64,000 nt of DNA, from the NCBI GenBank assembly GCA_004431415.1, contig QPMI01000671.1:62001-126000 (forward strand), in the 5' to 3' direction. Made by a program: the position numbers and the translations under genes. The notes beneath the pieces were generated by a model. That model did not search any database, was not told where the DNA came from, and worked only from the letters and a program-made list of their open reading frames with translations. The stretch is from Cyanophora paradoxa CCMP329. Taxonomy: Eukaryota; Plantae; Glaucophyta. Positions 1,367-29,910 of this stretch are shown here, piece by piece (position 1 is the stretch's first letter; every line of letters begins with the position of its first letter).

Positions 1367-4300
1367 ATGCGTCCCCTGCCTGGTCTTGCAGTCCTCTGCC
1401 TGTTGACGCTTCTGTGCGGGCGAGCACTGGCAAGCTTCCGGCCGGACCGAATATACAACGGCGGAGAGCATGTACCAGGCTCCGGGACCAGCGCTGGGCG
1501 CGGTCTCAAGGAGGACAGCGCAGCGGACCCCCACGAATTGGCGGACCCGGACAAGCACGGGCACAAGGCGAGCATGCAGGGCCGCAGCGCCTCGCCGTGG
1601 CGGGGCGCTGAGGGCGGGCGGCGCCTCGCAGATCTTGCTGCACGAGGAGGTGCTCGACACGCGGTGGTCGGGCGAGCAGGGGGCCGGCGAGGACGCGGCC
1701 GGCGCGGCGGCGGCGGCGATGCGGCGGCTGCTGGAGGCCGCGGAGGAGGCGGGGGACGAGCGGCACCAGACCCTCCTGGTCCGCAGCACGCCCCCGCCCG
1801 CCCCCGCCCGCCCCCGCCCCCACGCCGACGCTGGCCCGCGACGTGGCCCGCGGTCCGCAGGTGCACGTGAGCGGGCCGGTGACGTCGGAAGTGCGGGCGG
1901 AGATAGAGGCGGCGGCGGGCCTGCAGCTCGGCTCCTACGTGCCGCACAACGCCTTCCTCGCCAGCGCCCTCCCCTCGCAGCTGCAGGCGCTCCGGTGCGG
2001 CTCGCCGGCGCGCCCCTCCTCCGCGCGGGCGGTGCCAACGGAGCGGGCAGGGCGGCGCCGCACGTGGCGTGGGTGGGGCGGCTGGAGGCGCGGCACAAGC
2101 GGCACCCGGCGCACGGCGCCTCGCGGGCCCTCGAATGGCACGCGCACCTCTCCACGCACTGGGCCGCCCCCGCCGCCACCGCCGTCTCGCCGGCGGAGCT
2201 GGCGGCGCTGTGGGCGCACGAGCTGGCGGCGCTGTGCGCCGGGGGCGTCTCGCTGGAGGCCGCGCACGAGGGCCCCGCGGGCCCCACCGTCGTCGCCCGC
2301 CTCGGCCGCCCCGAGGACGCCCCGGCCCTCGCCGAGTTCCTCGCCGACCAGGTGCCCCCGCCCCGCCCCTCCCGGGGCCGGCGGGGTGGCCGGCTGAGGC
2401 GGCGGGCAGCCGGAGGTCTACTGGGTGCAGCCGCGCACCCGCATCGAGCTCAAGAACTACTACGCGGGGCGGTGCGCGCCGGCGGCGGGAGCTCGCGCCG
2501 GCGCGCCGGGCCGGGGCGACGGGCGGGGCGCAGGCTGGTGCAGGCGGGGGACTTTACGCTCCTCACGGGCGCCGCCGACATCCCCACCCCCGTCTACGCC
2601 CGCTGTCCGCCCCGCCCGCGCCCCCGCGCCCCGGCGCCCCCGCGCCGCGCTCACGGACCGGCGGCCGGGCGCAGCGCTCAAGGGGGCGGGGGAGGTGATC
2701 GGCTTCATCGACGACGGCCTAGACTACGGTGCCCCGCCCCGCCCTGCCCCCGGCGCCCGCCGGCCGGGGCGCTGAGCGCCGCCCCGCCCCGCCCTGCCCC
2801 GGCCATCGCGGCGCGCAGACAGCTGCTTCTTCGCGAACGGGGCGCAGCAGTCGCCGTCGGACGGCTCGAGCGCCGGCAAGCCCGACGTGACGAACCGGAA
2901 GGCGGGCCGGGCGCGCGCGAGGCGGCGGGGCGGCCCCCTGACGCCCCCGCAGGTCATCGCCTTCCGGTACAACGCCAAGTACGGCAGCGCCGAGGTCCCG
3001 CCCCGGCCCGGGCCCCCGCGCCCTCGGGGGAGCGGCGCTGATGTCGGGGGCAGGGGAACACGCAGCACGGGACGCACACGGCGGCGACGGCGGTGGGGCA
3101 GGCCTACTCCGGGGCGGGCACGGAGCAGATCCAGCAGCACGCCGGCGTCGCCAGCGACGCCAAGCTCACCTTCATCAGGCCCGCCCCCGCCCCGCCGCCC
3201 CGCCCCGCCCCGCCCCGCGCCCCACCTCCTCTGACGTCTCTGCGACCCGCCAGCATCAAGAACAAGACGGACCCGACCCGCGTGCGCCCCGCCGCACTCC
3301 CCGCATCCCTCCTCCCCTCGCCCCCGTCGACCGACGCCTCGGCGCAGCTGCTGACTCTGCAGTGGGACAAGGCCTTCGCCATCCACTACGCCGACGGGTG
3401 CGAGCGCACCCCGTCCGAGCTGCGCCGAGCGGGGCCGAGTTGCGGGGTGCAGGGCGCGGACGCACTCGAACTCGTGGGGGTGCGCCCCGTCGACGGACAA
3501 CCTCGCGGAGTGCAACGTCTACGACCAGGTGCCCCCCCCGCAGCGCCCCGGCGGCGGGGGCGGGGGCGGGGGGAGCTCATGCGGGGCGGGGCGGCAGGAC
3601 GCGCTGGTGTCGGACATGTACATGTGGAACTACACGGACGCCCTCCTCGTCTTCGCCGGCGGCAACGACGGCTCCGCCGGCGCGCCCCCCCGCAGCCGGC
3701 GCCGCCCTCCCCTGCGCAGCGGGGGCGCTGAGGGGGCGGGCAGGGGTGGCGACGGGGAAGCGGGGCTACATCTCGAGCCCGGCGACAGCCAAGAACGGCA
3801 TCTCCGTGGGGGCCACCATGACCGCACCCCAGGCGCCCCCCGCCCCGCCCCCGGCCCCCGCCGCCCCCCGCCTGACGGGGGCGCGGGGGCGGCAGGGCTG
3901 GCTCGACAATGCCGCCTTCGTCGCCTCGGACTACGGCTGCTCGGCCTACCCCGACTGGTGCGCCACGGAGAAGGTGACGAAGACGCCCGGGTACTACTCG
4001 CCGGAGAACCTGGCCGGCTTCTCCTCCTCGGGGCCGACGTGGGACGGGCGCGCCAAGCCGGACGTCGTGGCGCCGGGCTTCTTCATCGTCTCCGCCAAGT
4101 CGGACAACAACCCGCGCTCCTTCAACTGCGCCCTCCGCTCCGAGGCGGGCACCTCGATGGCGGCCCCCGTCGTCTCGGGCGCCGCGGCGCTGGTGCGGCA
4201 GTACCTGCGCGAGGGCTGGTGGCCCTCGGGCGTCCGCACCGCCAAGGACGGCATCGAGGCGCCGCAGGGGGCCCTCGTCAAGGCGCTCATCATCAACGGC

Positions 4301-6885
4301 GCCCGCCCCGCCAACGGCACCGTCGTCCACGACTTCCGCCGCATCGCCACCGTCTCCTCGTCGAACCCCGCCGTCCCCATCCTCTCCTCCCGCCTCCCCA
4401 TCCCCAACGCCTACCAGGGCTTCGGCCGCGTCCGCCTCGACACCGTCCTCCAGTTTCCCGAGTCGGCCTTCAAGATGACCTTCTGCGACGGCTACGCCCC
4501 CGCCGTCGGCGCCGCCGCCGTCGTCCTCACCGTCGCCCTCGGGCCCGAGGCCCGCTCGACCGTCCCCTTCCGCGCCACCCTCGCCTGGACCGACTACCCC
4601 GCCACCCCCAACGCCGCGGTGGTGCGAGCCGGCGCGCGGCCCGCAGACCCGGCGACCGCCCTGACGCGCCCTCCCCGCAGGCGCTGGTGAACAACCTCGA
4701 CCTCTCGCTCGTGTACAACGGCCGCACCTACTACCCCAACGGCCTCTCCGTGCGCCCCCGCCCCCCCGAGCCCGCTCCGCCGAACCCGACGCGCCCCCGC
4801 CGCAGAGCGCGGACAACGTGAACAACGTCGAGCAGATCGAGCTCCCCGTCGGCTCCCCGGCGGCCACGGTGACGCTGCGCCTCTCCACCCGCTCGCTGCC
4901 CAAGGGCCCCCAGCCGTACTCGCTCGTGCTCACGGGCCGGTGGACGGCCGTCTCGGGCTGCGCCCGCGTCCTCTCCGTCCCCGCCTCCTCCCTCCCGACG
5001 GGCTCCCTCACGGCGCCGCTCCCGAGCCCGCTCCCGAGCGCCGACTCGGAGCTCGTCGTGATGGCCACGCTCACCCTCACCCTCGACTTGGCGCGCTGGC
5101 CGGCCCACGTCGACGAGTTCCGCCGCGCCGTCGCCCAGCAGCTGCGCGTCGCCTACGCGCGCGTCGTCGTCGAGGCGGTGGCGGCGGGCAGCACGCGGGT
5201 CACCTTCTACGTCTCGAACCCGGAGTACCCGACGGAGGCGGCGACGCTGCAGGCGCTCTCGCTGCTGGCGTCGCTCAACACGGGGATCAACCTGGGGCCG
5301 AACCTTGTGGCCACCGCCCTCTCCTTCGCCGTCGCCAAGCCGACCGTCTTCCCCGACCCCTACGTCGTCGCCGGCAGCGCCGCCGTCACCCCCACGCCCC
5401 TCCCGGCCACGGGCGGCGGCGGCGGCTTCGGGGAGATGGAGATCGTCGCGGTCTCGGCGGCCTCGGCGGGGGCCGTCGTGCTCGCCTCGGCCGTCCTCAT
5501 CGTGTGGATGGCCGTCCGCTGGAGCCGCCACGCCATCCGCCGCGCCGTCGTCCCCGCCGGCTCCGCCTCCCCCGCCGCCGTCTCCCCGGCCCCCGGGGAG
5601 GCCCCCGCGGGGAGCGTGCCCCCGGCCGGCTTCCAGCTGCCCTCCCGCGCCGCACTCTCCCGCGTCGCCTCCTCGACCTCCCTCGCCCCGCCCCGCCCCG
5701 AGCGCGACGCCGACGCCCCCCGCTCCTCCCTCCCCCTCCCGGGCGCCCCGCGGCCCCCCGAGCGGGTCCCGGAGGAGAAGGCGGGGGAGGAGGGCGGGGA
5801 GACGGAGCCGCCGCCGCCGCCGCCGGTGGGGCTGGTGGAGGCGGTGAAGACGTCGGCCGGCTCGGAGCTCTCCAACGGCCTCCTCGTCAAGCCCGAGGCC
5901 GGCGCCCCCGAGGCCGAGGCCGCCAGCGACTCCTCCGCCTCCCCGGCCCCGGAGGCCGCCTCGCCCCCGACTCCGACCGCCCCGCCCGCGCGAGGCGGCG
6001 GCCGCGCGGCGCAAGCCCCCGCCGCTGGCGTCGATCGCGCGGCAGGGGAGCGGGCAGGAGGGCGAGGCGGGCCCCTCGGGCCTCCTCTCGAGCGCCTCGT
6101 CGCTGCAGAACGCGAGCAGGCGCAGCCTCGACAGGCACGCGCCCATGTCCGACAACGGCAACCTCATCCTCCGCTCCGGCGCCCAGGAGGTGCCGCCCCC
6201 GCCCCGCCCCGCCCGCCCCGCCCCGCCCCCGGCCCTCGCAGGGACCGGGAGCTGAGGCGGGGGGCGCGCAGGCGAGCTCCCCGCGGGCGGCCGGCCTCGG
6301 CAGCATGCGGGGCGGCGCGGTCGCCCCTGAGGCCGGCGAGGAGCGCGCCGCCGCCCCCGCCGCGCCCCCGGCGAGGTCCCCGCCGCGGCCGGCCCCTCGG
6401 AGGCGGCGCCTGCGCGGGCGGGGAGGCTCGCTGCGCGCGGCGCCGGCGTCCTCTCGACGCTCTCGCGCACGTTCAAGGCGGCGCTGGCCGGCTCGCGGCC
6501 CGAGATCCTGCCCCGCATCCTCTCCCTCCACTCCGAGCAGGCCGCCCTCAAGGCCCTCGAGCGCGCCATCGACTCCTTCGGCGGCGCCGACGACGACGAC
6601 GAGGCCGACGCGGCGCGGGCCGCCCCCGCCCCCGCCGCCCCGGCAGGCCCTCCGCCCCCTCCGCCCGCGCCGTCCCTGAGCTCCCGCCCTCTCCCCCGCC
6701 GGTGACGGAGGGGGCGCCCGGCGCCGCCGGGCCGCTCGGCGTCGCTGCCGGGCCGCTCCCCGCGGCAGCTCCCGGGGGCAGCGCCGGGGGCGCCGGCCTC
6801 GCGCTCGGGCTCCGTCTCCTCCCTCGACATGGAGACCCGCCGCAGCGCCGCGCAGGACGACACCGCCTCCCGCACCGCCTGGTAG
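1367..6885 (+). CDS. Subtilisin-like S8 peptidase, Kp43/TagC-like, type I membrane protein (paralog 1)
   Basis: Signal peptide MRPLPGLAVLCLLTLLCGRALA and prodomain YVPHNAFL. Catalytic motifs FIDDGLD, HGTHTAAT, HSNSWG, FAGGNDG, SPATAKN, FSSSGPTWDGRAKPDVVAPG, GTSMAAP, QGFGRVRL. C-terminal beta domain LAWTDYP..LVNNLDL..NNVEQI, then SEA-like AAGSTRVTF, a TM helix at about 5442-5516 and a low-complexity tail. About 20 introns; tail splicing and the stop are less certain. Confidence 0.9.
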
Positions 6886-7139
6886 CCCCCCGCTTCCCCC
6901 CGACCCCTCGCCCCACACCTCCTTAGCTCCCTTTCTATCCCATGGCCAGCATAGCATATCCATTGCTTCTGGTCGCGCTCGCGCCTCTAGATTTGCATGT
7001 ATGATTCGAACTCTATTCTATGACCGCATTTGCAGCACGCGTTTGCAGCAGTCCCTGTGCACGCGTACCCCGCAAATTCGGAAAAAAGTCGACCACCTTC
7101 GAAGTTTCCAGCTCGACGCAGAGAAGCCATCTCGCAGCC

Positions 7140-8735
7140 ATGAACAACGCTTTCGTTTCTCCGGTACCCATTGCAGCGATCTCCGGCGCGCCTGGCACGC
7201 TCCCGGCCGCCGCGCATCTCTGCGCCTTCGCGGCGCGCCCCTCAGCGGTCGCCAGCGTGCGCCCCGCTGCACGACTGCGGCGAAACTTCGGGTCGCGCCT
7301 CAATCTTCGCGCTGCGCGGCTTTTCCGCTGCCAAGCAACGCCGCAAGCGCTGCCCATCGTCTCGCAGCGCGAGAACCCGGCCCCAGGCTCTCGCGAGCGC
7401 CCCGAGGACGACGAGGAGAAGCAGAAGACGTCGACGCGCGAGCCTGTCGAGGAGCCGCGCACCTTCGCGGAGCAGGACGTGCTTGATGCGTGGAGCGATT
7501 TTGACCAAGAGGAGCCCGCCGAAGAGCGCACGTCCGACACGCAGGGAGGACGCGAAGAGGAGTATGAGCGCGGCGATCTCGATTTCATGTCCTTCGCCCC
7601 GCTCTTCCTGTTCTCTGACCTGGCCGCCTCCCTGCGCGTACGTGGGCGTTCATTCGTCTAAATCGAGAGCCTTGCGAAATCTAACCGCACTTCCAGATCG
7701 ACGTCCCGATGCCGCAGCGCCTGCTCGACTTCTTCCGCGTGAGGCCGACCCCGCGCCATTCTTTTCGCTGCGACTTAATTTCGCAGGCGTTGACCCTCTT
7801 CGACCCCGTCCCCTCGACGAGCCTGATTGCGTACGCTTGGCTGGGGTGCCCAAGTTTCCTCCTTTGCACGCATTTTTGATCCGCGAGTTCATGACCTCGC
7901 GGCAGCTCCATGCTCGGCGTGGGGGCTATCCAGCTCCGCGAGAAGCAGCGCGCGGCGCGCGCCCCCGGTCACAACGCGCGCGCCATGGCCGCCTCGGTCT
8001 CCCGCCGGGTCCGTCCCGCACCTGCCCTCCCGCTTCTTCCCCCTCCTCACGAAGCCGGGCAACAGGTGAAGAACGCGTACGAGAGCGCGCAGACGGCGCT
8101 TGCGCTCGTCCTCTCCGGCCTCGTCGTCTGGGGATCAGTGTTCCACGAGGTCCCCAAGGCGCTCGAGCAGGTCCCCGGTGCGCCCGTCCTCGGCGCGCCG
8201 CGCGGCGAGGGTCATTTGCCTCGGGCGCGCCGCTCATTCCAGCGCAGGCGGCGAACTCGTCAACGCGGGGTCCCCAGTGACTGGCGCCGCTTTTCTGGCG
8301 GCTCTGATCGCTGGGTCTCTCTTCGTTCAGATGCAGATGGCGCGGCCGCGCGCCCCGCCGGCGCGCCCGGCTGCTCTGACGCCGCGCGCGCAGCTCTCGC
8401 CCCTGCTCTCATATGAGGAGCGCGAGATCGAGTCCGGCCGCAAGCAGAAGCTCGGGGAGGCCCCGCGGTGCGCCCCGCCCCGGCCGCACGCCGCGCCGCC
8501 TCCCGGTCGTGAGCGCGGGGCGGGGGCAGGCCGCGGCTGTGGGGCGTCGACGCCTCCCTCATGTACACGGCCCTCGAGCTCGCCAAGGCCCGCCCCGCCC
8601 CGCCCCGCCCCGCGTTCCGCCCTGTTCGCGAGGCGCGCTCGCCGGCAGCTGGGGAGCCTGGTGGGCATCATCTACATCCTCTCGCAGGCCGGGGGGCCCC
8701 TCCCCAGCCTGCCCAACACCCTCGGCCTCCTGTGA
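7140..8735 (+). CDS. Putative plastid-targeted membrane protein of unknown function (weak DUF4149-like resemblance)
   Basis: Starts MNNAFVSPVPIAA, followed by an Ala/Arg/Ser-rich, acid-free stretch ending RCQA (transit-peptide-like). Hydrophobic exons ALALVLSGLVVWGSVF, AAFLAALIAGSLFVQMQM and YTALELAKLGSLVGIIYIL; stop TGA 8733-8735. Confidence 0.6.
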
Positions 8736-9000
8736 GGCCCGGGCGCCCCCGAATTCGAAGAGCCTCCCAACAATGCCTCAAAGCGCGCGTGGAGCCGGCG
8801 CTGGCGTCGCATGCAGCGGCCCAGCGGGGCGGCCTGCCACCTTTCTGTACAGTCCAACACAGCCGTAAATGTCAGCTAGGGCTCTCTGGATCAAATTCTA
8901 TTCGCTTTTCTCATCGACAGACCAAAAAATAGGGGCACGTGACAAATACCTGTAGCTATAGTCAAGCTAATCTTAATGGAGACACCACTATTCAGATCAT

Positions 9001-12813: not shown

Positions 12814-14535
12814 ATGCGTGCCGGGCCCCTTGTAGCGCTGCTGGCGCTGGCCCTGCTGTCCACATGCGGGGCATCGCACAGAGCCAGCTCCCGACTCGCC
12901 GGTCTTCGCAGCTCCAGCGCGCACGAGCTCGCGGATCACTTGCTCCACAGCCGTAAGGTCCGCAAGCCTCGACGCGTGCAACCAGTCCTTCCAAGCGCAT
13001 TATCTCTGATGCGCGCATTAGATCCTGCTCCTGGGCGAGGTCATCGACACAGAGGCCGCCCCGGACGCGAGGGACCTGCGCGGTACCGGCCGGTACGCGC
13101 TGGCGGACGCTGACGACGCTCAACATCACATCTACTTCGTGCGCTCTAGCTACTGCACATCTCTTGTCGCCCGGGATCCCTGCTAGTAACGCTGCCTCCT
13201 TGCACCCAGGTACAGCTCGAGGCGCCAGTTACGGCGGCGGCGCAGAGGGCGGTGGAAGCGGCGGGCGGCGTTCGTCTGGGACCTTACATACCGCACAATG
13301 CGTACCTCGTCTCCGCGACGGTGGAGCAGCTGGCCCGGATCAGGCGCGTCGCGCCCTTGGCCCCAGCGCCCTGAGGCTCCCGCTGAGGCTGGCGCAGGGC
13401 GGTGCCGCACGTGGTGTGGGCAGGCCGACTGAAGAGGGAGCACAAGGCGCATCCGATGCTGGCGGGACCGGCGGCGCGGGCCTACTCGACGTGGACAGCG
13501 CACGTGGCGGCAGAGTGGGCGGCGGGGCAGGGGGTCCCGACGGCGCACCGGCTTGCAGGCGCGCCTCGCGGGGAGCGGGCGGCGCGCTGACGCGGCTGAC
13601 GGGCGGGGCAGGGGTGTGGCGGCGGCAGCTCTCGGCGTCGCTGCGGGGCAACTTCTCGATCGAGGCGCTGGACGAGGGGCGCGTGCGGGTGACCCTCCGC
13701 AACCCCCACGACGGGCCCCTCGCCCTCGAGTTCCTCACTTCAAAGGTGCTTGCCTTCCTTTTCGTTCCTCTCCGCGGGACCCGCTCCCTTTTCCCGCTGC
13801 CCCGTCGGCCCCTCGCCCGGGCGATGCCGACCTCTGGGGCAGCCGTCGGTGCACTGGGTGGAGCCGCGGCGGCCGCTGGCCTTCAAGAACGTCTTCGCGA
13901 GCCGCCTCTTCCAGGGCGACTTCGCCTCCTCCGCCGCCGAGATGGCCGACCCCGTCGCCCGCCCCGACGCCCTCCCCACCCCCGTCTACGACAAGGGTGC
14001 CCTGCCCCGCCTGCCGCCGCCCCGGCGCCCCGATCGGCGCTCCCCGCTGAAGAAGGAAGCAGGCATCACGGGCTCTGGGGAGATCATAGGCCTCATCGAC
14101 GACGGCATCGACTTCGGTGCACCTCTTCACGCCTGACGCCCTGCAGCGGGCGCCTGACGCGGCGGCAGACCACTGCTACTTCGCGGAGAGCAAGGGCGTG
14201 ACGGCGGTGGCGGCGCCGGCGGTCTCTTCGGTTGCCGCCGACCTCACGAAGCGGAAGGTGGTCGCGGCGCGCTACGACCCCGTCTGGGGGGACCCGACCG
14301 TGCGCCCCCCGTGGGCGCCGATGTAGGCTCCGTGCGCGCCAACTCACGCGGCGCAGGCGTCGACGGCGCACGGCTCGCACACGGCGGGGACGCTGGTGGG
14401 GCGCCCCTGCGAGGGGTGCGTGCCGGAGGACCCGGGGGCCCCGACGACGGCCGCCGGCGCCGCCGCCCACCGGGGCATCGCCTACGACGCCAAGGTGCCC
14501 CAGGGACGCCTCCCTGTGCCCCCCGAAGCCAACGC

Positions 14536-14575
<40 letters not shown>

Positions 14576-17500
14576 CCTCCCCAGGTGACGCTCTACAACG
14601 TGGTGAACAAGTCGAGCAGCGCGGTGCCGCCACCCCGCCCCGCCGCCCCTCTCAAGCGGCGGGGGCCTGAAGGGGCGGCGCGCGGGCGCAGCTGCTGAGC
14701 GCGGACTGGTACAGCGTCTTCGCCCTCCACTACGCCGACGGGTGCGCGCGCCCCGGCGCTGCCCCCGCCCCGCCCCGCCGATACGCCGGGCCGAGTTGCG
14801 GGGTGCAGGGCGCGGATCCACTCGAACTCGTGGGGGTGCGCCCCGCTCCTGACCGACGTCTCCTCCTGCAACCTCTACGACGCGGTGCCGCCGCCCCTCC
14901 CGCCCGCCGCTCTCGTCCTCACCCCGCCTGGCCCGCCGGCCGGGCCCCGGGGCAGGACTCGGTGATGGCGGACCGGTACATGTGGAACCACACCGACGCC
15001 CTCCTCGTCTGGGCCGCCGGCAACGACGGCATCGACCGTGCCCGCCCCGCACCCGCCCCGCCCCCTCCCCGGCAGGAGCCGACGGGGGCGGGGGCAGAGG
15101 TGACGCGGGAGAGCGGGGACGTGGTGGGCGCCGTGTCGGCCCCCTCGACGCACAAGAACGGGCTCGCCGTGGGCGCCTCCTTCAGCTCCACCGCCGGCTT
15201 CCTCTGGGTCACGCAGCCCGTCGCCGGCGGGCCCAGCCTCGCCGCCGCCAACGGCAAGTGCGCCTCGGGCGGCGAGGTCTCGGGCGCCGAGGAGTGGTGC
15301 GACCGCTCCCAGGTGCGCCCCCTGCCCCCGCCCCGCGCCTCCTCTGCGCGAGGGCGGCAGCCCGAGGGGGCGGGGGCAGATGTCGGCGGGGAGCGGGGCG
15401 TTCAACTCGCGCAACCTCGCCTCCTTCTCCTCGTCGGGCCCGGCGTGGGACGGGCGGGTGAAGCCCGAGCTCGTCGCCCCGGGCTTCCTCACCATCTCCG
15501 CCGCCGCCGACTCCAAGCCCGCCTCCTTCAACTGCGGCCTCCGCACCGAGGAGGGCACCTCGATGTCCACCCCGGCCGCCGCCGGCGCCGCCGCCCTCGT
15601 GCGGCAGTACTTCCGGGAGGGCTGGTGGCCCTCGGGGGCCCGCTCCGGGGCGGACGCCATCCCCCGGCCCCTCGCCTCGCTCGTCAAGGCCGCCCTCGTC
15701 AACGGCGCCCGCCCCCTCACCGGCACCGTCACCACCGTTAAGGCCTACCCCGGCGCCGCCTGCACCTCCGACAAGTCCTGTCCGCCCCCCGCACCCTTCC
15801 CCTTCTCTCGTTTTGGGGCGACCCACGCACCGCGCAGGCCGGCGGCTCGCAGTGGGCCCCCCCTCGGCTCCCGTACCCAACAAGTTCCAGGGGTATGGCC
15901 TGGTCCGCCTCGACACCGTCCTCTAGTGCGCCGTACCCCCGCTGGCCGCCATCCCCCCGCCCCCTCTGAACCCACACCCCCCTCAGCTTCCAGAACTCGC
16001 CCTTCAAGATGGGCTTCTGCGACGGAGCCTTCGGCCCGTCGGGCGCGGTCGCCGCACCGGCCGTCTCCTTCTCCCTCAGCGTCGTCGGCACCCTTCGCGC
16101 CACGCTGGTCCGCCCGCCTTGGAGTGTAGGTAGGATCGAAAGAGGGGGCCTGGAGCGGGGCGGGGCGCAGGCGTGGACGGACCCGCCGAACGACCCGCGG
16201 GCGGGGAAGGCCCTCGTGAACGACCTCGACCTCGCCCTCGTCGTCCCCGGCGGCACCGTCTACCCCAACGCCCTCACCGTGCGTGCTTGCAGCCGGCGGC
16301 CCTGCTCCTCGCCCCGCCCCGCCCCGCCGGCGGCCGAGCGAGGGCGGCGCAGGGACCCGACCGCATCAACAACCTCGAGCACGTGCGCCGGGGCGCCCCC
16401 GCGGGGCCGCCGCCCCCTCCCCCCGACGACGCCCCCAGGTCGAGTGGACGACGCCCTCGAACACGACCAACGTCACCGTCATCATCCGCGTCTCCCCCTA
16501 CAGCGTCCTCCCCAGTGCGCCGGCCCGCCGCCCCCGATCGTGCCGCCCCTCACTCGGCGGCCCGGCAGAGTGGGGGGCCCAGCAGTGGTCCCTCGTGCTG
16601 CACGGCAACTGGCAGGGCCCCGCCGCTCTCTCCTGCCCCCGCTCCCTCTCCGTCCCCGCTTCCGCCCGCGCCGCCGGTGCGCGCGTGCACGCGCCCCCAT
16701 TCGATGCGGCTCGAGTGGCGCGCAGGGCCCAGCAACCCGTACGGCTCTGAGGAGGTCCCGGTCCCCCAGGCCGGCGGTGCGCGGCCCGGGCCCAGGCGCC
16801 CCGGCCGAAGCGCTGACGCCGCGTGCCGGCCAGGCCCGGCGCTGCTGGCGGACGTGACGCTGGACCTGGAGTACGAGGCGTGGCTCGCCAACGGGGCGCA
16901 CCGGGAGCAGTTCGCGCGGGGCCTCGCCGCCCAGCTCGGCGTCGGCCTGGCGCGCGTCGTCGTGCACGGGGCGGCCCGCGGCAGCACCGTCGTCACCGTC
17001 TCCATCGCGGAGGCGGCGGCGTCCGGGGCGCAGGAGGCGAGCCTCGCGGAGGCCTACCGGACCCTGGCGCGCCTCAACACGAACCTCGACCTCGGCCCGG
17101 GCCTCGTCGTCCTCGCCCTCTCCCGCTTCCGCCCCGCCGGCACCGCCGCCCCCACGCCCACCCCCGGCGGCACGACGACGACGGGCGGGGGCGGGGGCGG
17201 GGGCAGCAACACGGGGGCGATCATCGGGGGCGTGGTGGGGGCCGTGCTGGGCGTCGCCCTCCTCGCCGCCGTCGTCTTCATCGCCCTCCGGCTCACCAAG
17301 CGCAAGCCCAAGGCCCCCAAGGCCCCCCCGGGGGCCCGCCCGGGGGAGAGCCCGCCGGCGTCGGGGCGCAGCTACGCGCTGCCCCACGCGCAGACGCACC
17401 GGCCGGAGCACCCGGACGCGCCGTACGTGCAGAAGGACGACTGGGACCTGCCGCACGCCTCCTCGGGCCACTCCTCGCTCCCCTACGCCGGCTCGGGGCC

Positions 17501-18371
17501 CGGCGCCCTGCCCCTCTCCAGCGCCTCCAGCGCCGTCCACGTCGCCCTCTCCGGCGACCCGTACGCCTCCCCCGCCCCCTCCGCCGGCTCGGGGCACCTG
17601 CGCGTGCCTGGGGCGCCCCTCTCGCCGGCCCCCTCGGGCGGCGGCCTCGCGCGCGCGGCGAGCGGCCTCGCGCGCTCGGGCTCGGGGATCCTGTACCCGC
17701 AGCGCCCGCAGCCGGCGCCCGGGCGGTCGCGGGACTTCCTCGACTGGTCCCTGGGGCACGGGGAGGGGGCCGAGGAGCCGCGCCTCGCCGCCGCCCCCTC
17801 CGCCAAGCACCGCCTCGACGCCCTCTTCGGCGCCGGCGGCCCCGCCCCGCCCTCACTGTCTCCCGGCCCGACTCCGGCGGCCCCGACCCCGCGTACCCTT
17901 CCCCGCCCCCGCCGGCCCTCGCCGCCGCCCTCTCCGCCCCCCGCCGGGGTACGGCGGCGGGGGCGACCCGCGGGACGGGCTCGCGGGGCCTTCTCGGCGC
18001 CTTCCGGGCCGGAGCGGCGGGGAGCCTCGCGGGGGCCGCCTCCACCCCCGCCCCCTCCGCCCCGGCCCCGGCGGGCTGGGCGGCCTCGGCGGCGGCTACG
18101 ACGGGGGCGGGGGCGTGCTCGCCCCGGCCCGAGCGGCGCCGCCCAGGAGGTCGGGCGCCGCGGCACCCTCGCCGCCGCCCCCTCGGGCCCCGGCGGCGCG
18201 CGGCGGCCGACCCTGGCGCCCGCCCTCTCTGCCGGTCCCGCCTTCGCGGCCGGCAGCGGGGACGAGTACAGCGGCGGGGACGGCGACGGGTACGGCGACT
18301 TGCAGCGCGCTGCATCCGCGAATGTACGTCCGCCCGGTCCGGGGCGGCGAGGCACTCCATTCCCCCGGTAA
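12814..18371 (+). CDS. Subtilisin-like S8 peptidase, Kp43/TagC-like, type I membrane protein (paralog 2)
   Basis: Signal MRAGPLVALLALALLSTCGA. Motifs IGLIDDGID, HGSHTAGT, HSNSWG, WAAGNDG, FSSSGPAWDGRVKPELVAPG, GTSMSTP, LAWTDPP..LVNDLDL. SEA-like ARGSTVVTV, then TM AIIGGVVGAVLGVALLAAVVFIAL followed by RLTKRKPK. The tail end is approximate. Confidence 0.9.
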
Positions 18372-20041: not shown

Positions 20042-20256
20042 TGAACTGCTGAACTGTCTGAACAGCGGTCGCGGGTACAACAAATCAGAGGGTTCGCAGT
20101 GAGCGAAGCGGCGACAGGCAGCATTGGGCGTTCATGGTGGCAGCGCGACTGCAGAGTTCTTTCTGACCACCGCGACCCTCTTGACTGCAAAGTTGTTGGT
20201 TCGAGCTCCGGTTGACGACGCGCTCCGGCCGCGAAAAGCGGCTACGCGCCCCAGCA

Positions 20257-23200
20257 ATGAGCGGCAAAGATGCGGAGGTGCGTTCTGGATGTCCGCATGG
20301 AGCGCGCGCCAACAATGCGACGCGCCGTTGAAGCAATGTCGCGCCGGGCGCTGCAGGTGAAGGTGACGAACCTGGATGAGAAGCATGCAAAGCCGACCGA
20401 TGGCAGCGCGCCGCCGCCGAAGAACCTCGGCTCTCTGCTTCGGCTCTTCAAGTCCCAGTTCTTCGATGTGCGCGTGTTTTGCTTCGCCTCCCTCTATCCC
20501 TGACTCTTCCCGCTAGGCCTTTATCGCTATAACGTATCTTCACAAGTACGACCATCAAGGAGTGCAGGACTATCTCTGCAACGAGCTTTACAAGTATCCA
20601 GACGAGGTTATCGAGCAGTACCTTCCGCAGCTATGGTGCGCGAATGGCTCTCACATTCCTTCGCATTCCTTCCTCTGCGCGTTCCTTCGACTAGCTCTGC
20701 GCTCTCAGCGCCGTCTTCGCGCGACTGACGCCGCTTCCAGCCACTTGCTTCTTCACCGGGAATCCCCGGCGCTGGAGCGCTTCATTCTGGACCGCTGCGC
20801 GAAGAGCATGCATCTCGCATTCCAAACATTCTGGTTCTTCCACGCTTGTGCGGACGACTTTCAGAAGGGTGTCACAGGCGAGAACCGCTCGACGCTCCTG
20901 CGGGGGCGCTGCGAGACGGGCGCGGTCAACGGCTACTGGTCCACGCAGCCGAGCGCCAACCCCAAGAAAGAGGAGGGCGACGGAAACACCTTCGGGAAGA
21001 ACAAGTTCAAGTCTGTGCCGGCCGAGCTGAATTCAATCCTGCTGGAGGACACGCGCGATCGAGACGACGCGGACGAGAAGGACCCGACGAACCAGCCTGC
21101 TCAGACCGGCGCAGACGGCCAGGCCAGCGCCAGCGGGGAAGCCGCGCCGGCTCCCGAGTACACTGGCGAGGAGCTGCTCGCGGATAACCGGACCATCGGC
21201 GTGCCAAACACGCCGAACCCCTCGGGCCGCTCGGCGTCGACCAGCCCGCCGCCCCTTCCCACCGTGACCGCCTCCTCTTCCTCCTCCCACACCCGCGTGA
21301 CCTTCGCCAACGGCGACGGGCCCGCCGACGCGCCCCTCCCCGCCCTCACCGTCTCCAACACCGACACCGGCACCAGCGAGGCCGCCGCCATCCCTACCTC
21401 GCCCACTGTCCGCCCCGCCCCTGCGCCTCGCGTGTCTCGCCGCGCGCCGAGCCGTGACCGGCCCTGCAGAAGGAGGAAGACGAGGATTACCAGGTTAAGT
21501 GGCTCATGAGCAAGCAGAAGCGCTTCGAGTACTTCACGGCGGAGGTGCGGATTCCCGCCTCGCCCCCTCTCTCAGCACGGCGCTCCGCCCCCCTATGCCT
21601 CACCGTCTCTTTTCTGCGCAGATCAACTTTTTCCGCCAGCTCGCGAACATTGGCTTCAGGCTCACCAAAGTCTTCCCCGTAGAGAACAGGAGTGAGTGGT
21701 TGTTCTGGGCGGCCCGCGGCCCGCTCGTGGATGCTCAGCCTCCCCCCCCTTCTCCGCGCGCAGATCCCACCCTCCGTGCAGAGCTGGATCATCTAAACTC
21801 TCAGGTGCGTCCCTCTGCGATGCGGTGACCGCCGCTGCCGGCGGGGGGGGGCCGGGCCTGACGGGCTGTGCGCAGCTGCCGAGCGGGGTGTACCTGCCGG
21901 TGTGCAAGGCGACGGACAAGTACGCGCGCATCTGCCGCATCCCCGTCGAGGAGGCCGTCTGCCTCAACTCGCGCGAGAAGGCGCGGCCGCCGCCCGCGCC
22001 GGCGCGCCTGCGCGCCGGCCGGCCGCCTTACCCGCCGCGCCAGGTCCCGTACCTCGTCTACCTCGAGGTGCTCGACACGGAGCTCACGCCGGCCTCCACG
22101 AACATCTACGAGACCGTGCGGCCCCCCCCGCGTGCCGCTCGGGCCCAGCGGCGCCGGCGCCGACGCGCGGCGCGCAGGCGATGACGCTGAGCGCGGCGGA
22201 GGAGGAGGCAAGGGACCGCGCGAGGCGGGCGCGCTCGCTGTACCTGGCGCCCCCGCCGCCCCCGCCCAAGGAGAAGCCCCGCTCCAAGTCGCCCTTCCGG
22301 AGGAGAGAGGGCCCGAAGGAGGAGGAGGGGGAGGCGCCGGGGCGGAGCAGGACGCCGCAGCGGGGGGCGGCCGCCTCGCCGCCGCCGCTTGCGCCGGGCG
22401 GGATGTCGCCGACCTCGCCGGGGCCGTCGGAGGAGAAGAAGGCGCCCGGGGAGCGTCCCGAGGATCTGATGATCCTGAAGGCGATCGAGCGGGCGAACAA
22501 GGCGACGCCGAAGCAGCTGCAGGAGCAGCAGCGCGAGAAGACCATGGCCGGCTTCCGCTTCGAGCACCAGGACAAGGTCCGCCCCGCGCCCCGCCCCCGC
22601 CCCAGCGCGCCGGGCCGAGGCGCGCGGCAGGTCTTCTCGGAGACGTGGGGGGACAAGATGGGGCGCATCCGGAAGCAGAGCCCGTACGGGCACCTCCCCG
22701 GCTGGCGCATCACCTCCGTCATCGTCAAGAGCGGGGACGACTGCCGCCAGGAGCAGCTCGCCTCGCAGCTCATCGAGGTCCGCCCCTCCGCGCCCCGCCA
22801 CCCGTCCACGCGCGCGCCACCGAGCTTGGGTCCGGGCGGCAGGTCTTCTACAACATCTTCCGGGAGGCGAAGCTGCCGCTCTGGCTGCGGCCCTACTCCG
22901 TCCTCGTCATCTCCTCCCACGCCGCCCTCGTCGAGACCGTCCCCAACGCCCCCTCCGTCGCCACCCTCAAGAAGCAGGCCCGCCCGCGCCCAGAGCGACG
23001 CCTGCCCCCTGCCCGCCTTGACCGCGGGGCGGGCAGACGCCGAACTTCACGACGCTGAAGGACTACTTCAAGGACAAGTTCGGCGGGGGCGACGTCAACT
23101 CGGACGGCTTCCGCCTGGCGCAGCGCAACTTCGTGGAGAGCATGGCCGGCTACTCGCTCCTCACGTACCTCCTCCAGATCAAGGACCGGCACAACGGGAA

Positions 23201-23759
23201 CATCCTCCTCGACGCCGAGGGCCACATCGTGCACATCGACTACGGCTTCATGCTCTCGAACTCGCCCGGGGGCGTGAACTTCGAGACGGCGCCGTTCAAG
23301 CTGACGGCGGAGTTCGTGGAGGTGATGGGCGGGGAGGGGACTGACGCCTTCAACTACTTCAAGTTCCTCTGCGTGCGCGGCTTCCTCGAGCTCCGCAAGC
23401 ACCACGAGAAGCTCGTCCTCCTCGTCGAGATGATGCGCAGGGGTGCGCCCCGCTCCCCCGCCGCCCCCGCCCCGCCCCCCCGCCCCCCCACTGAGCCCCT
23501 CGGCGCGCCGGCAGGCTCGAAGCTGCCGTGCTTCCTCGGGGGCAAGGCGGCCGTCGATGCCTTCCGGGACCGGTTCAACATCACCCTCACGGAGCAGGCG
23601 GTGTGGCCCGCCCGCCCGCCACCCGGCCGGCCGCGCCGGCGGGCCTGACCCCCGGGGCAGGGTGTGGAGTTCATGATGCGGCTCATCGACGAGTCGGCGA
23701 ACAACTGGCGCACCCGTCAGTACGACAACTTCCAGCGCATCACCAACGGCATCCTCTAG
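20257..23759 (+). CDS. PI4KB: Phosphatidylinositol 4-kinase type III beta (PIK1-like)
   Basis: N-terminal LLRLFKSQFFD..ITYLHKYDHQGVQDYLCNELY..YLPQL; LNSREKVPY; IVKSGDDCRQEQLA; SMAGYSLLTYLLQIKDRHNGNILLD..HIDYGF..FETAPFKLT; ends NWRTRQYDNFQRITNGIL*. Confidence 0.95.
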
Positions 23760-24388
23760 CGCCCCCGGCCCCCCGTACCCGAACCCCACCCCAGCTATCC
23801 CGTCTTTCACCCGCCCGCCTTCCCCAGCCCCACAACCGCCTCAGATCTCTACCGCCTCCCTTCCTCCACAGCGCCCCCCCGCCTCCCTCGGCCCCCCGAC
23901 CACAGCAGACTCCGCAGACTCCGCAGGCTCCGTATTTTCCCCGGAACACCACCGCAGCTAGTCGCTCGAGTGATCGTTATTCCACAATCGATATCATTGC
24001 GTCGTGCGTCTCCAAGGGCTCTGCGCCGCATGCGCACGCGCTAGAGCCACGCGCCACTGGGCCAAGCACGCATACGAGGCTGAGCAAGGTGCAGCTTGCG
24101 CCGCTTGCGCAGCTTGCGCAGCTGCAGCTGCAGCTGCAGCCTGCAATTAATATTGCAATTTGATCAACGTCAACGTCGACGTCGATCGATCGATCGATTC
24201 GGCGAATTTTCAGCGCACCGTACCCCGCCAGCCTCTGAGCCGCCGACGTTACAGCCGCAGCTCCCCGCGGTCCCTAGCTCGCCGGTCAGCTCGATTCTCC
24301 GACAACAACAGAAAGCTCGACCAGCTGCTGGACCCCGCTCCGCAGTGCTCGGGGGGCGGCGGTGGGGGGCCAGGTGGAGGCCCGCGCG

Positions 24389-27300
24389 ATGCGTTGCGGC
24401 GTGGTCGTTCTGCTGCTGGCTGCGTTAGCAGCCTGCACTGTAGCTGTCGAGCACCGGCGAACGCACGGCTCCAACGACCTCGCTAATCACGCGGCACACC
24501 CCAGGAAGGTCTGCGAACACCGGCCTGCATACGCCACGCATTCGCCAGCGCTGCTGACAACCGCTTTTCGTGGAGGTTCTTTTGCTTGGCGAGGTGATAG
24601 ACACTACTCGCGCGGAGTCAGAGGCTGATGCAGGTCCGGAAGCGACCTCGAGTCGCGGTTTGCGTGCGGTGCGCCACCGAGCGGCGAGTACAAAGGCCCA
24701 GCGGATATACATCGTAAGAGCTTCCGGTTGCATTCGGTTCTCCCCCCTGGCGATGCCTGACAACGTCGGCCGTTCGTGCCGCGAGCAGGTGCAGCTTGAG
24801 TCGCCAGTTACGGCGGCGGCGCAGCGGGCGGTGGAAGCGGCGGGCGGCGTTCGTCTGGGACCTTACATACCGCACAATGCGTACCTCGTCTCCGCGACAG
24901 CGGAGCAGCTGGCCCGGATCAGGCGCGTCGCGCCCTTGGCCCCAGCGCCCTGAGGCTCCCGCTGAGGCCGGCGCAGGGCGGTGCCGCACGTGGTGTGGGC
25001 GGGGCGGCTGAAGAGGGAGCACAAGGCGCATCCGATGCTGGCGGGACCGGCGGCGCGGGCCTACTCGACGTGGACAGCGCACGTGGCGGCGGAGTGGGCG
25101 GCGGGGCAGGGGGTCCCGACGGCGCACCGGCTTGCAGGCGCGCCTCGCGGGGAGCGGGCGGCGCGCTGACGCGGCTGACGGGCGGGGCAGGGGTGTGGCG
25201 GCGGCAGCTCTCGGCGTCGCTGCGGGGCAACTTCTCGATCGAGGCGCTGGACGAGGGGCGCGTGCGGGTGACCCTCCGCAACCCCCACGACGGGCCCCTC
25301 GCCCTCGAGTTCCTGTCGAACCAGGTGGGCCCTGCCCGCCAGCCAGCACCCCGCGCCCCCTCAGGCCCGGCCGCCGGCGCAGGGGCTGGTGCACTGGGTG
25401 GAACCGCGGCGGCCCATCGTACTCAAAAACCTGTACGCCAGCCGCGTGATCCAGGCCGACGTCACGTGCGCCCCGCCCCCCCCCTCCCCGCCCCCCCCCC
25501 CCCCCCCCCCCCCCCTCCCCCTCCCCCTCCCCCTCGCCGCTCCGCGCCGCTCAGCGGGGCGCAGGAGCACGGCGGAGCAGCTTGCGGACCTGGTGGCCAA
25601 CCAGCGCGCCATTGCGACGCCCATCTACGACCGGGGTGCGCCGCAGTTCGCTCCAGCGTCTCCCTCGCCCCCTGACGCGCGGCAGGGATCGCGGGGGCGG
25701 GCGAGGTCGTCGGCGTCATGGACGACGGCCTCGACTACGGTGCCCCGCCCGCCCCGCCCCGCCCCGCCCCGCCGGACGCCTGACGCGGCGGCAGACCACT
25801 GCTACTTCGCGGAGAGCAGCGGCGTCTCGCCCATCCCGGACCCCCTCGTCTCGGACAGGCCCGCCCCCGGGCCCGACCCCCCGGCCTTGGGCTGGCGGGG
25901 CAGGGGAGCGGGGCGTGACTGCTTTGGGGCTGCGCAGCAAGGCTCAGCCGCAGCGGCGGAAGGTGATCGCTTCGCGCTTCAACACGCAGTACGGGAACCC
26001 CATGGTGTGCTGCAGCAGGGACGGAGGGGGCCCGCCGCTGTGTGACGGGGCGCGCAGATTTCGAAGGCGCACGGGACGCACACGGCGGCGACGGCGGTGG
26101 GGAACCCGTGCAGCGGCTGCGTGCCGTCGGCGGCGACGCCGGGGGCCACGCAGGCGAGCACCCTCGCCCACCGCGGCATCGCCTACGACGCCCAGGTCCC
26201 CGCCCCCGCCCGCCACGCATCCTCCCCCCGTCCTCCACTGCACCCTCGCCCTCACCGGCGCCCCCGGACCTCCCCAGCTCTCCTTCATCAGCATGGCCGA
26301 CCGCTCCGGAAACGCGCGCCCCCGCGCCGCGACCCGGCGGCCCCGCCCCGCCCCGCCTTGCTGACGCCCCCGCAGCTTCTCACGTACGAGTGGGACAAGG
26401 CCTTCGTCGTCCACTACAATGACGGGTCCGCCTTGGTTCCTCGCCCCGCCCCCCGACCCTCTGGATGTAGACGCGCCGGCCGGCAGCGTGCGCGTGCACT
26501 CGAACTCGTGGGGCTGCGCCCCCGCCGCCGAGCGGCCCTTCGAGTGCAACGTCTACGACGAGGTATCCCGGCCGTCCCCGACGTGTGTCCCCTCGCCCGC
26601 CCCGCCCCGCTGACACCCGCCGGGCGGCAGGACGCCGTGCGGGTCGACTCGTACGCGTGGTACTTCCCGGTACGCGGGGTCCCGCCGGACGCTGGCGATG
26701 CGCCCCGCCCGACGCCTCCCGGCCGGGGGCCCCCGCAGGACGCGCTGCTGATCTTCGCGGGGGGCAACGACGGCGCCACGCCGCGGCCGGCCAACAGCGG
26801 CAAGGGCGTCATCTCGACCCCTGCCACCGCCAAGAACGGCATCAGGTCCGCCCCGCGCGCACTGCCCGCGCGGCGCGCCGGTGAGCCCCGCCGGCAGCGT
26901 CGGGTCGGTCTTGTCGACGACGGCCGGCTTCCTCGCCGGCACGGAGACCGTAGCCGGCTCGACGCCCGTCGACAACCGCCCGTGCGCCGGCGCGCGAGAG
27001 GGCTCGCGGGCGGGGCGCGAGGGGGCGGGGCGCAGGGGGATGAAGGCGTGCGCGGCGTACCCGAACTGGTGCAACCGGGAGGCCGTGCGCGCGGCCACCG
27101 ACGTCGTCTCCTCCAACAACCTCGCCACCTTCTCCTCCTACGGGCCCACCTTCGACGGCCGCGTCAAGCCCGAGGCGCGCCCCGCCCCGCCCCACCCGCC
27201 CGCCTCCTGCTCGCCGGCCCCCGAGCGGCCCGGCAGGTGGTGGCGACGGGCTTCTTCGTCATTTCCGCCAACGCCGACTCCGCCTCCGACTCCTTCAACT

Positions 27301-28190
27301 GCGGCCTCCGCGCCGAGATCGGTCCGCGGCGCTCGTGCTCCGTGCGAGGCGCCCCCGCCATCGGGCCTCTCACGGGGCGCCCCAGGGACCTCGATGTCGG
27401 CCCCCGTCGTGGCCGGCGCCGCGGCACTGGTGCGGCAGTACTTCCGCGAGGGCTGGTGGCCTTCTGGCACCAAGGTGCCCCCGCCCCCGCCCCCCCTCCG
27501 GGCCCCGCTGAGCCCCCGCCCTCTGCAGCGGGCGGCGGACGCCATCCCGGCGCCCCAGGCCTCCCTCCTCCGCGTGCGCCGCCTCCCGCCCCGCCGTCGA
27601 CCCGGAGCTGCTGCCGACGGGCCGGCGACAGGCGGCGATGGTGAACGGGGCGCGGCCGGTGACGGGCACCGTCGCGTCGGACCTGGCGCACCCCGGCAGC
27701 ACCTGCACCGCCGCCGTCGGCTGTGCGCGCCCCTGCCCCGCCCTCGCGCTCCCAGCCGCTTCCGGCTCGACGCCGGCGCCCCGCGCGCAGGCAAGCGGAC
27801 CTCGGTGGGCCCGCCCAGCGAGCCGGCCCCGAACGCCTTCCAGGGCTACGGCCGCGTCCGCCTCGACACCGTCCTCTAGTGCGGCACAGCCTTCTGACCG
27901 CCCAGGAGTCCGCCCCGCTCACGGGCGCCGGCCGCAGCTTCTCGGACTCGCCCTTCCAGATGGCGTTCTGCGACGGATACTTCGCGCCCGGGGACAACAC
28001 GCCGGTGCGGGTGAACATGACGGTGACGGGGACGCTGCGGGCGACGCTGGCGTGGACGGACCCGCCGGGCAAGGCGAACGCCCAGGTGCCCCTCGTCAAC
28101 AACATCGACCTGACCCTCACCGCCCCCAACTCCACCGCCTTCACCTTCGTCCACCCCAACGGCGGCGACGTGCGCTCCGCTCGACAATCT

Positions 28191-28228
<38 letters not shown>

Positions 28229-29910
28229 TGCCGGGCGTCCGCCCCTAACCGCCCCCGCCCCCAGCTCCCCGACAACGTCAACAACGTCGAGCACGTGCGC
28301 CCCGGCCGCCCCAGCGGGCGCCATCCCAGCCAGCTGCCTCACGCCACCCGCCGCCCTGCAGATCGAGTACTCGCCGCCAGGCGGCGGCCCCACCGTCGTC
28401 GTCCTCACCGTCGCCCCGACCCGCATCGACCCCTGTGCGCCCGCCCGATCGCCCCACGCCGCCTCATGGCGCCGGTGCTGAGGGGCGGCGTCGGTGTGGC
28501 GCAGTGTGGGGCCCGCAGCCGTGGTCGCTCGTGCTGCACGGCCGCTGGCTCGGCTCCATTCCCGGCGGCTGCACTCGCTCCGTCTCCATCCCCGTCCCCG
28601 CCGACGGTCCCTGCCGCCTCGCCCCGCCTCTCCCCGCCCCCCGCCGAACGCGGCGCGCGCGCAGGCCCGAGCAATCCGCACGTGACAGACGAGATTCCCG
28701 CTGTCCCCGAGCTTACGAGCGGTTCGCCGGCCCCGCTCCCGGCTGCCCGCCCGCCGGACCCGGTCCTCACGGGGCTCCGGCAGGCTTCGTGCTGATGGCG
28801 AACGTGACCGTGGCGCTGCCCATCGCCGAGTGGAGCGAGGCGTACGCCGGGCACTTCGCGCGGGCGCTGGGGCGGCAGATCGGGGTGAGCGGGAACCGGG
28901 TCGTGGTGGACGGCGTGCACAACGGGAGCACGGTGGTGTCGATGTACCTGCGGCCCGTCGAGTACGGCAACGCGGCGCTCGAGGCGAGCAGCGCGCAGGC
29001 GTACCGCAACCTCGCCCGCATCAATACCAACCTCGCCCTCGGGCCCGGCCTCGCCGTCCTCGCCCTCTCCCAGTTCCGCGTCATGCGGCCCCGCACCCCC
29101 GCCGGCGCCTCCCCCGACCCGGGCGGCAAGGCCGTGCTGCCCCCGAGCCCGTCGCCGACGCCGGCGCCGGCGGCGGACGAGAGCACGAAGGTGATCGCGG
29201 GGGTGGTGGCCGGGGCCTCGGCGCTGGTCGTCATCCTCGCCGGCATCGCCCTGCTGCTTATGCGGCGCGCCATCCGCGAGAAGCGCGCCATCATCACCCG
29301 CATGGAGGAGGCCCAGCGGCAGGCACGGCCCCGCGCCGCGCGCCCCCTCGCCCCGCCCTGAAGGGGGGGCCGGCAGGTGCAGGTGGTGCGGGTGGACCTG
29401 GACGCCGACCACCCGCAGCCGCTCTTCCTCGCCCCGGGCCGCGACCCGCTGGGGGCCTCGGCCCGCGAGGGCCCCTCCCTGGCGGCCACCTCTGACCCCG
29501 GCACCCACATCCTCCCCATCCCCGCCCTCCCGCCCCTCGTCCACGAGCCCCTCCCCCCTCGCTCCGCCTCCCTGGGGGGCGCCCTCCCCCGCGCCCCCTC
29601 CGTGCGGGCCCCGCCCCGCGAGCCCCCGCGCTCGGGCGGCTCCCTTTCCCCCGAGGACGTCCCCGTCGTCCTGCTCCCGCGCCCGAGCGCCCTCGCCGCC
29701 CCCGCGGCCGCCGCCGGCCGCGACGACGACAGCGACGACGAGACGACGAGCGGCGGGCCGCTCTCGTCGGCGGCCGTGCGAAGCGCGGCCCCGGGGCGAC
29801 CGAACGTCTTCGACGCCGACGCGCACGCCGTGCACCTCGACGTGCCGCGCGTGGCCCCGGGCGGGCCCCTCCCCGCGGCCACCATCAAGGCCACCGACGT
29901 CTTCCTCTAG
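24389..29910 (+). CDS. Subtilisin-like S8 peptidase, Kp43/TagC-like, type I membrane protein (paralog 3)
   Basis: Signal MRCGVVVLLLAALAACTVA. Motifs VGVMDDGLD, HGTHTAAT, HSNSWG, FAGGNDG, FSSYGPTFDGRVKPE, GTSMSAP, LAWTDPP..LVNNIDL. SEA-like HNGSTVVSM, then TM VIAGVVAGASALVVILAGIALLLM followed by RRAIREKR; stop TAG at 29908-29910. Confidence 0.9.

Follow-up and report, generated by a model that had tools for sequence, protein, structure and literature searches.

What tethers an intact subtilisin-like protease to the membrane of a glaucophyte alga, and could the tether cut itself? The question is raised by three paralogous, intron-rich genes on the forward strand of contig QPMI01000671.1 of Cyanophora paradoxa CCMP329, within a stretch of 64,000 nucleotides (positions 62,001 to 126,000; hereafter the window, numbered from its own first letter). 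Each gene encodes an S8 protease followed by a module of about 100 residues beside a single predicted transmembrane helix. An initial annotation, made from the DNA letters, had proposed that this module is a SEA domain that breaks its own chain between a glycine and a serine and so lets the enzyme leave the cell surface. Our preferred reading is that the three proteins are type I subtilases of the KP-43 type, tethered by a SEA-like module that would self-cleave at Gly|Ser; we give it a probability of roughly 0.45.

Three membrane-anchored subtilases

The three genes coincide with public spliced models of C. paradoxa (EukProt tig names), which map onto the window exactly and without mismatch; beyond these models, the window DNA was searched exon by exon or open reading frame (ORF) by ORF. 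Gene 1 (1367..6705, + strand; model exons 1367–6702) is tig00021612_g22866 (P0003), with 21 exons encoding 1342 amino acids, and its frame, with a G+C content at third codon positions near 100%, tracks the exons. Gene 2 (12814..18371, + strand; model exons 12814–18368) is tig00021612_g22869 (P0002; 1316 amino acids, 24 exons), and gene 3 (24389..29910, + strand; model exons 24389–29907) is tig00021612_g22872 (P0001; 1219 amino acids, 30 exons). At these loci the domain order first described for the three paralogs is confirmed: a predicted signal peptide, a pro-region, the S8 domain, a beta domain, the module, a Pro/Thr/Gly linker, a transmembrane helix and a tail. The proteins of genes 2 and 3 are 51% identical over residues 240–1040. 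G+C content is about 75% across the subtilase region of the window, where short introns are abundant.

Pfam matched Peptidase_S8 (PF00082) in the three proteins with E-values of 1e-40 to 3e-42 (1.1e-40 for gene 1) and found no other domain, SEA included, along their whole length. The motifs carrying the catalytic Asp and His, the oxyanion Asn and the catalytic Ser are intact in all three exon translations, with codons at 2710, 3066, 3664 and 4154 in gene 1 and at 14098, 14369, 15022 and 15560 in gene 2. In gene 3 the catalytic exons (25688..27474), which Pfam also assigns to S8, hold them at 25721, 26070, 26766 and 27391. The nearest solved structures to the catalytic region are KP-43 (1wmd, E 1.4e-29, the best PDB match) and SubHal (5fax, E 3.2e-29), with the next match at E 1e-9. 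Both the intact D/H/N/S set and the KP-43 affinity had been anticipated, and on this sequence evidence genes 1–3 encode predicted KP-43-type S8 subtilases with intact catalytic residues. The Cyanophora proteins share with KP-43 and SubHal the four catalytic residues and a beta domain after the catalytic domain. They differ from these secreted bacterial enzymes of about 430 amino acids, which have no module, transmembrane helix or tail. The segment ahead of the protease had been called a prodomain; its N-terminal position agrees with that name, while the pro-region gave no Pfam match, so that 'prodomain' describes position only.

A hydrophobic, signal-like segment opens each protein. Near residue 1000, 31–38 residues past the module, stands a single strong hydrophobic helix with a basic stretch after it. 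The helix lies at 5442..5516 in gene 1 (hydropathy peak at P0003 residues 993–1011, with a basic stop-transfer segment after it), at 17217..17288 in gene 2 (P0002 residues 1004–1022, score 2.94, with a Lys/Arg-rich stretch) and at 29191..29262 in gene 3 (P0001 residues 1003–1021, score 2.75, with an Arg-rich stretch). Together, the signal-like segment and the single helix with its basic stretch predict a type I topology with the protease and its beta domain outside. The predicted cytosolic tails, long, disordered and of low complexity, with Ala, Pro, Ser, Gly and Arg abundant, comprise 331 residues in gene 1 (5517..6702; three introns), 294 in gene 2 (17289..18368; one intron) and 198 in gene 3 (29263..29907). 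They contain no Pfam domain and, as had been claimed, are mutually unrelated, with no significant similarity between them (best BLASTP E = 10). A word-based homologue search with the C-terminal ORF of gene 1 gave no match, the query probably being swamped by low-complexity words.

Gene 3 is transcribed and spliced as modelled. Contigs of the RNA-like runs X1–X3, which come from two studies, skip its predicted introns of 52–82 nt with GT/GC..AG ends, and, as expected of genomic sequence, a contig of run X12 stays collinear with the DNA. The comparison was made on gene 3, the runs being recorded only as 'RNA?' and their contigs giving no expression level. In the gene model an intron at 29323–29376 takes out an in-frame stop at 29359, and the contigs of X1, X2 and X3 show this spliced joint, with a contig piece (28783–29316) that spans the module joined to 29371. 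Since the stop is spliced out in the contig, the tail of gene 3 belongs to the same message as its module.

The module itself occupies 5046..5345 in gene 1 (P0003 residues 861–960; profile match 862–959), 16842..17141 in gene 2 (P0002 residues 874–973) and 28786..29091 in gene 3 (P0001 residues 864–965), all on the + strand, and a search of the six-frame translation of the window with its profile found exactly these three copies. They are 43–48% identical to one another. The G-S-T-x-V motif noticed at the outset is present in each, with the Gly codons exactly where it had been placed: Gly at 5187–5189 and Ser at 5190–5192 in gene 1, Gly at 16980–16982 and Ser at 16983–16985 in gene 2, and Gly at 28924–28926 and Ser at 28927–28929 in gene 3. 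In gene 2, the exon for the module, the transmembrane helix and the start of the tail begins at 16836, two codons upstream of the module, and in gene 3 its counterpart begins at 28786, at the module; the matching intron is absent from gene 1. An exon-delimited module fits its acquisition or retention as a unit.

Predicted fold and relatives of the module

To judge by its modelled structure and its place in the protein, the module is quite probably SEA-like in both fold and role. An AlphaFold model of the gene 3 module built on an 18-sequence alignment (m02ef9652e5c4; predicted local distance difference test (pLDDT) score 80.9, predicted template-modelling (pTM) score 0.71) has the element order β1-α1-β2-β3-α2-β4, with G53-S54 in the β2-β3 turn, the only hairpin. 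The model was aligned exhaustively to 48,161 PDB representatives. First among them stood the MUC16 SEA domain 1ivz (Z 7.8, root-mean-square deviation 3.4, 98 residues aligned), and ranks 2–11 were almost all SEA or SEA-like juxtamembrane domains; the ranks after 1ivz comprised Trop2, the membrane-proximal domain of SorCS2, the ferredoxin-like domain of Nup54, dystroglycan 596–728, MUC16 SEA5, the SEA-like domain of CARD1, TMPRSS6 83–289 and Gpr126. Lower ranks included the transmembrane-protease SEA domain 2e7v (Z 6.1), IA-2 and the domains next to the membrane in protocadherin-15 and cadherin-23. A Foldseek search and a second alignment agreed, with Trop2/EpCAM, IA-2/phogrin and dystroglycan at the top. 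SEA-like domains are a tiny share of the ferredoxin-like folds in the library yet make up nearly all of the top eleven, which argues against chance. The top matches are reportedly, for the most part, the divergent SEA domains of Pei and Grishin. According to the CARD1 paper, SEA domains typically sit immediately before a transmembrane helix.

A model of the gene 1 module from its single sequence had a pLDDT of 61 and only generic ferredoxin-like Foldseek matches, and we set it aside as weak; its topology is the same as that of the alignment-based model. Among ESM Atlas models, the nearest to the module model were membrane-proximal domains of KIAA0319, PTPRR, plant ALE2-type kinases and a cluster of plant aspartic proteases, and the Atlas's own model of P0009, a relative, independently gave neighbours of this membrane-proximal kind. 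The plant cluster consists of 215 land-plant A1 aspartic proteases of about 631 amino acids; in these, and in ALE2_N receptor kinases, one domain superposes on the module at TM 0.69–0.76 over about 100 residues. These modelled superpositions hint that combinations of a protease with a SEA-like domain may occur in land plants too.

The relatives of the module are few. An exhaustive profile search of 1.84 billion representative proteins returned, at E < 0.001, nine proteins besides the three of the window; two were repeat proteins and were discounted, and the remainder are uncharacterised eukaryotic proteins. A profile search limited to short proteins added three further fragments only. The same module occurs without any protease. 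In the metagenomic protein P0005, a mucin-like Thr-rich region is combined with four modules; P0007 has a Cys-rich ectodomain and two modules; and the metagenomic P0006 (2108 amino acids) has teneurin-type EGF repeats, two G-S modules (1398–1660), a transmembrane helix at about 1696 and four cytosolic EF-hands. A further relative, P0012/P0064, comes from Picozoa. In every full-length relative, the last module stands 24–150 residues ahead of a single transmembrane helix, a placement seen in P0005, P0006, P0007, P0012 and P0015. C. paradoxa itself has another protein of the family, P0010 (EP00741, tig00021178_g19195), in which a module with G-S follows an unrelated N-terminal region; its 170-residue gene model stops inside the module and is probably truncated.

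In the 18-sequence alignment the Gly and the Ser are the only invariant columns, and the pair lies in the hairpin in 18 of 18 sequences. Most of the protist relatives read G-S-V-V-V. The hairpin is free of insertions and deletions throughout, which fits a turn of constrained length.

Outside the window, we did not find the module attached to a subtilase. A search with gene 3 from protease to transmembrane helix, against about 5.8 billion proteins, retrieved 50 S8 proteins, none of which outside the window carries it, an absence bounded by the length windows and word filters of the search. A C-terminal transmembrane helix does occur in several S8 proteins of algae and protists, where other domains or no domain at all come before it, and no algal S8 relative retrieved carries the module. 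A full-text literature search for a SEA domain with a subtilisin-like protease found no such combination described. Within the retrieved S8 proteins and this literature search, the architecture is as undescribed as the initial annotation had supposed: an S8 protease with a SEA-like juxtamembrane tether would be a new combination of domains. The Chlamydomonas proteins VLE1/sporangin, Cre03.g190250 and Cre14.g628800 are likewise algal S8 proteases with a predicted transmembrane helix, and VLE1 is freed from the membrane by proteolysis (PMC6313938); VLE1 differs in being type II and kexin-like, and no SEA-like module has been reported for these Chlamydomonas subtilases. On another contig, C. paradoxa has a fourth transmembrane subtilase, P0025 (tig00000403_g262). 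Its stretch ahead of the helix (about residues 1040–1190) has a similar predicted β-α-β...β-α-β pattern, lacks G-S and carries an Arg-rich insertion in place of the hairpin; a profile comparison with the module gives no significant similarity (probability 6.5%).

Self-cleavage and its alternatives

Under the preferred reading, the module would act as its counterparts in MUC1 and matriptase do: while it folds, strain in the β2-β3 hairpin would drive an N-to-O acyl shift at Gly|Ser, and from then on only the common β-sheet would join the part bearing the protease to the stub in the membrane. The enzyme would be kept at the cell surface until shed by dissociation or by a mechanical pull, and a short stub with its tail would remain. 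In MUC1 the cleavage motif is G|SVVV in the β2-β3 hairpin (PMC4456727), and strain drives cleavage in SEA and SEAL domains alike (PMC10556640). The SEAL domains of bacterial RsgI anti-sigma factors, which self-cleave in a strained β-hairpin while the sheet keeps the parts together (PMC10556640), resemble the module in being SEA-like domains beside the membrane (PMC10556640) and differ from it in being bacterial, in the residues at the cleavage site and in their attachment to anti-sigma factors. The features that support self-cleavage are the G-S in the β2-β3 hairpin, the fixed length of that hairpin and the relatives with the exact MUC1 motif. We put cleavage of the module itself at slightly below an even chance. 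Release that depends on force is plausible if the module cleaves; that the tails might signal is speculative.

A number of observations weigh against this reading. Pfam found no family in the modules, its SEA profile (PF01390) staying silent even at E 10 in all 18 module sequences, and a profile search of PDB sequences with the module family returned no SEA chain, giving chance-level matches only (MIF, eS24). The one sequence link to SEA is a language-model lead at 0.82–0.83. Every structural Z lies below 8, a range in which the tool warns that similarity may reflect a common arrangement, and Foldseek E-values reach only 0.01–0.05. The SEA identity proposed at the outset accordingly survives in the AlphaFold and Foldseek comparison and in the placement beside the membrane, and does not extend to sequence profiles or to Z scores of 8 and above. 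In the wider family, the weak Pfam matches are to other domains: FAZ1_cons in 8 of 18 members (best E 5e-6, below the cut-off) and TRADD-like_N in 6 of 18, P0005 alone being above the cut-off.

The motif itself also calls for caution. Here the sequence in the three paralogs is G-S-T-V-V or G-S-T-R-V, a Thr replacing the first Val after the Ser, and with 31% of columns invariant among the three, conservation of G-S among them is unremarkable. In gene 3 (28921–28929), G-S is preceded by Asn, so that a glycosylation sequon, N-G-S, coincides with the putative cleavage site; genes 1 and 2 have none there. Replacing G-S by Ala-Ala in silico lowered the score of each relative by 6–7 bits out of 36–46, a loss that drops most relatives below the library threshold, so that the 'invariance' of G-S is partly an artefact of the search. 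Finally, TRADD-N domains have a strongly conserved turn between β2 and β3, of a small residue and Ser, in which the Ser contacts a binding partner (PMC8195603). Because these non-cleaving domains keep a Gly/small-Ser turn, the motif alone is not diagnostic of autoproteolysis.

The alternative that best survives these points, and which we regard as a serious if tentative possibility, is that the SEA-like module acts as a stalk or in an interaction and does not cut itself, like the domains of IA-2, EpCAM/Trop2 and TMPRSS6 and most SEA domains of MUC16, its Gly-Ser turn being structural or serving binding. Any shedding would then be the work of another protease, or of the enzyme itself, cutting the linker or the module in the manner of Notch or dystroglycan. 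Among the best structural matches, several are indeed SEA-like domains that do not cleave, and the partner-binding turn of TRADD-N, the share of G-S invariance owed to how the relatives were found, and the Thr in place of the first Val of G-S-V-V-V in 3 of 3 paralogs all favour such a stalk. P0025, from the same genome, with a look-alike region before its helix that has an Arg-rich insertion and no G-S, lends it weak support. What a plain stalk accounts for less readily is the fixed hairpin length across the family. The pattern G-S-hydrophobic-hydrophobic-V is, moreover, a hallmark of cleaving animal SEA domains.

It is improbable, in our estimate, that the module has nothing to do with SEA and is a generic ferredoxin- or RRM-like domain, or one of the TRADD-N/FAZ1_cons type, recruited to the cell surface. 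The fold is very common, the wider family gives Pfam signals for FAZ1_cons and TRADD-like_N only, the Z scores stay below 8, and the low-confidence first model matched generic ferredoxin-like folds only. Against this, SEA and SEA-like domains fill nearly all of the top 11 of 48,161 places, with RRM, ACT, Cas6 and ribosomal ferredoxin-like folds lower. TRADD-N (PF09034/PF20694; 1f2h) does share with the module an RRM-like β-α-β-β-α-β fold and a small residue followed by Ser in the β2-β3 turn (PMC8195603). It reaches a Z of 5.8 versus 7.8 for SEA, however, and it works inside the cell as an adaptor joined to Death-like domains, with no known cleavage, whereas the module is predicted to be extracellular and sits beside the membrane as SEA does. 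The three Cyanophora modules match neither PF20694 nor PF09034, which places them outside TRADD-N. That the module is instead an additional I9-like propeptide on the C-terminal side, which would chaperone or inhibit the subtilase intramolecularly rather than tether it, is very improbable: subtilase propeptides have a β-α-β-β-α-β topology and the module directly follows the protease, but no subtilase propeptide is among the 50 best structural matches, the module is present in relatives without a protease, and its profile alignment with the proteins' own pro-region has an hhalign probability of 1%, on which ground we rejected a duplicated propeptide.

Known systems, the surrounding locus and significance

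Two animal systems are close to the predicted architecture. The module resembles the SEA domains of MUC1-type mucins (1ivz and 7sa9, Z 7.8 and 6.8) in predicted fold and strand order, in its place beside the single transmembrane helix of a type I protein that has a cytosolic tail and, on the N-terminal side, a large ectodomain, and in having G-S in the β2-β3 hairpin where MUC1 cuts. It is unlike them in having no Pfam SEA match and a Thr after the Ser, and the Cyanophora ectodomain is a protease with intact catalytic residues, whereas that of the mucins consists of mucin repeats. In the type II transmembrane serine proteases (matriptase, enteropeptidase, HAT, TMPRSS6), a SEA-type domain likewise lies between the membrane and a serine protease, and the SEA domains of TMPRSS6 (9nrc) and HAT-like 2e7v align to the module with Z 6.7 and 6.1. 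These metazoan proteins have an N-terminal signal-anchor and an S1 protease of chymotrypsin fold; the Cyanophora proteins, with an N-terminal signal peptide, a C-terminal transmembrane helix and an S8 domain, fall outside the family. Any likeness is a convergent combination of domains and not orthology.

The pro-regions of gene 2 (13207–13506) and gene 3 (24786–25085) are 97% identical in DNA along 300 nt or more, in introns as well as exons, and the proteins are 97–100% identical over residues ~90–210, the rest of both genes being about 50% identical. The pattern suggests recent gene conversion, limited to the pro-region. The stretches between the subtilase genes (6900–12800 and 18400–24380) hold other gene models, two in each as the numbering implies, and are mutually dissimilar; Pfam gave no usable match for eight long ORFs from them. 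As the intergenic stretches have no mutual similarity, we rejected a segmental triplication of a unit of about 11.5 kb, or a simple tandem array. Some joints of gene 3 (26313–26376 and others in 24300–29950) are GC..AG among GT..AG introns, all of 50–100 nt. Four ACC-induced subtilases of Cyanophora have been described (PMC11603287).

SEA-type self-cleavage is a well-studied source of surface proteins that separate under force, in animals among mucins, receptors and membrane proteases and lately, through SEAL domains, in bacteria. Should the module turn out not to cleave, the combination of domains would still be clean and new, and the module would merit a profile of its own. If it does cleave, an early-branching alga would be added to the range of the mechanism, through a domain family to which present SEA profiles are blind; these would be the first subtilases tethered in this way, and a domain of about 100 residues that is easily expressed would be at hand for probing how far the chemistry of the G|S hairpin is conserved. 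A wider proposal, which we think unlikely as it stands, is that protists (glaucophytes, Picozoa and eukaryotes of marine metagenomes) have an autoproteolytic SEA-type family missed by SEA profiles, and that Cyanophora keeps its three active subtilases at the surface as non-covalent heterodimers, from which release of the protease, by force or by dissociation, leaves a stub with a divergent tail to report the event. If true, these proteins would be a subtilisin-based counterpart, in mirror topology, of the SEA-bearing membrane proteases of animals and of MUC1-type sensors.

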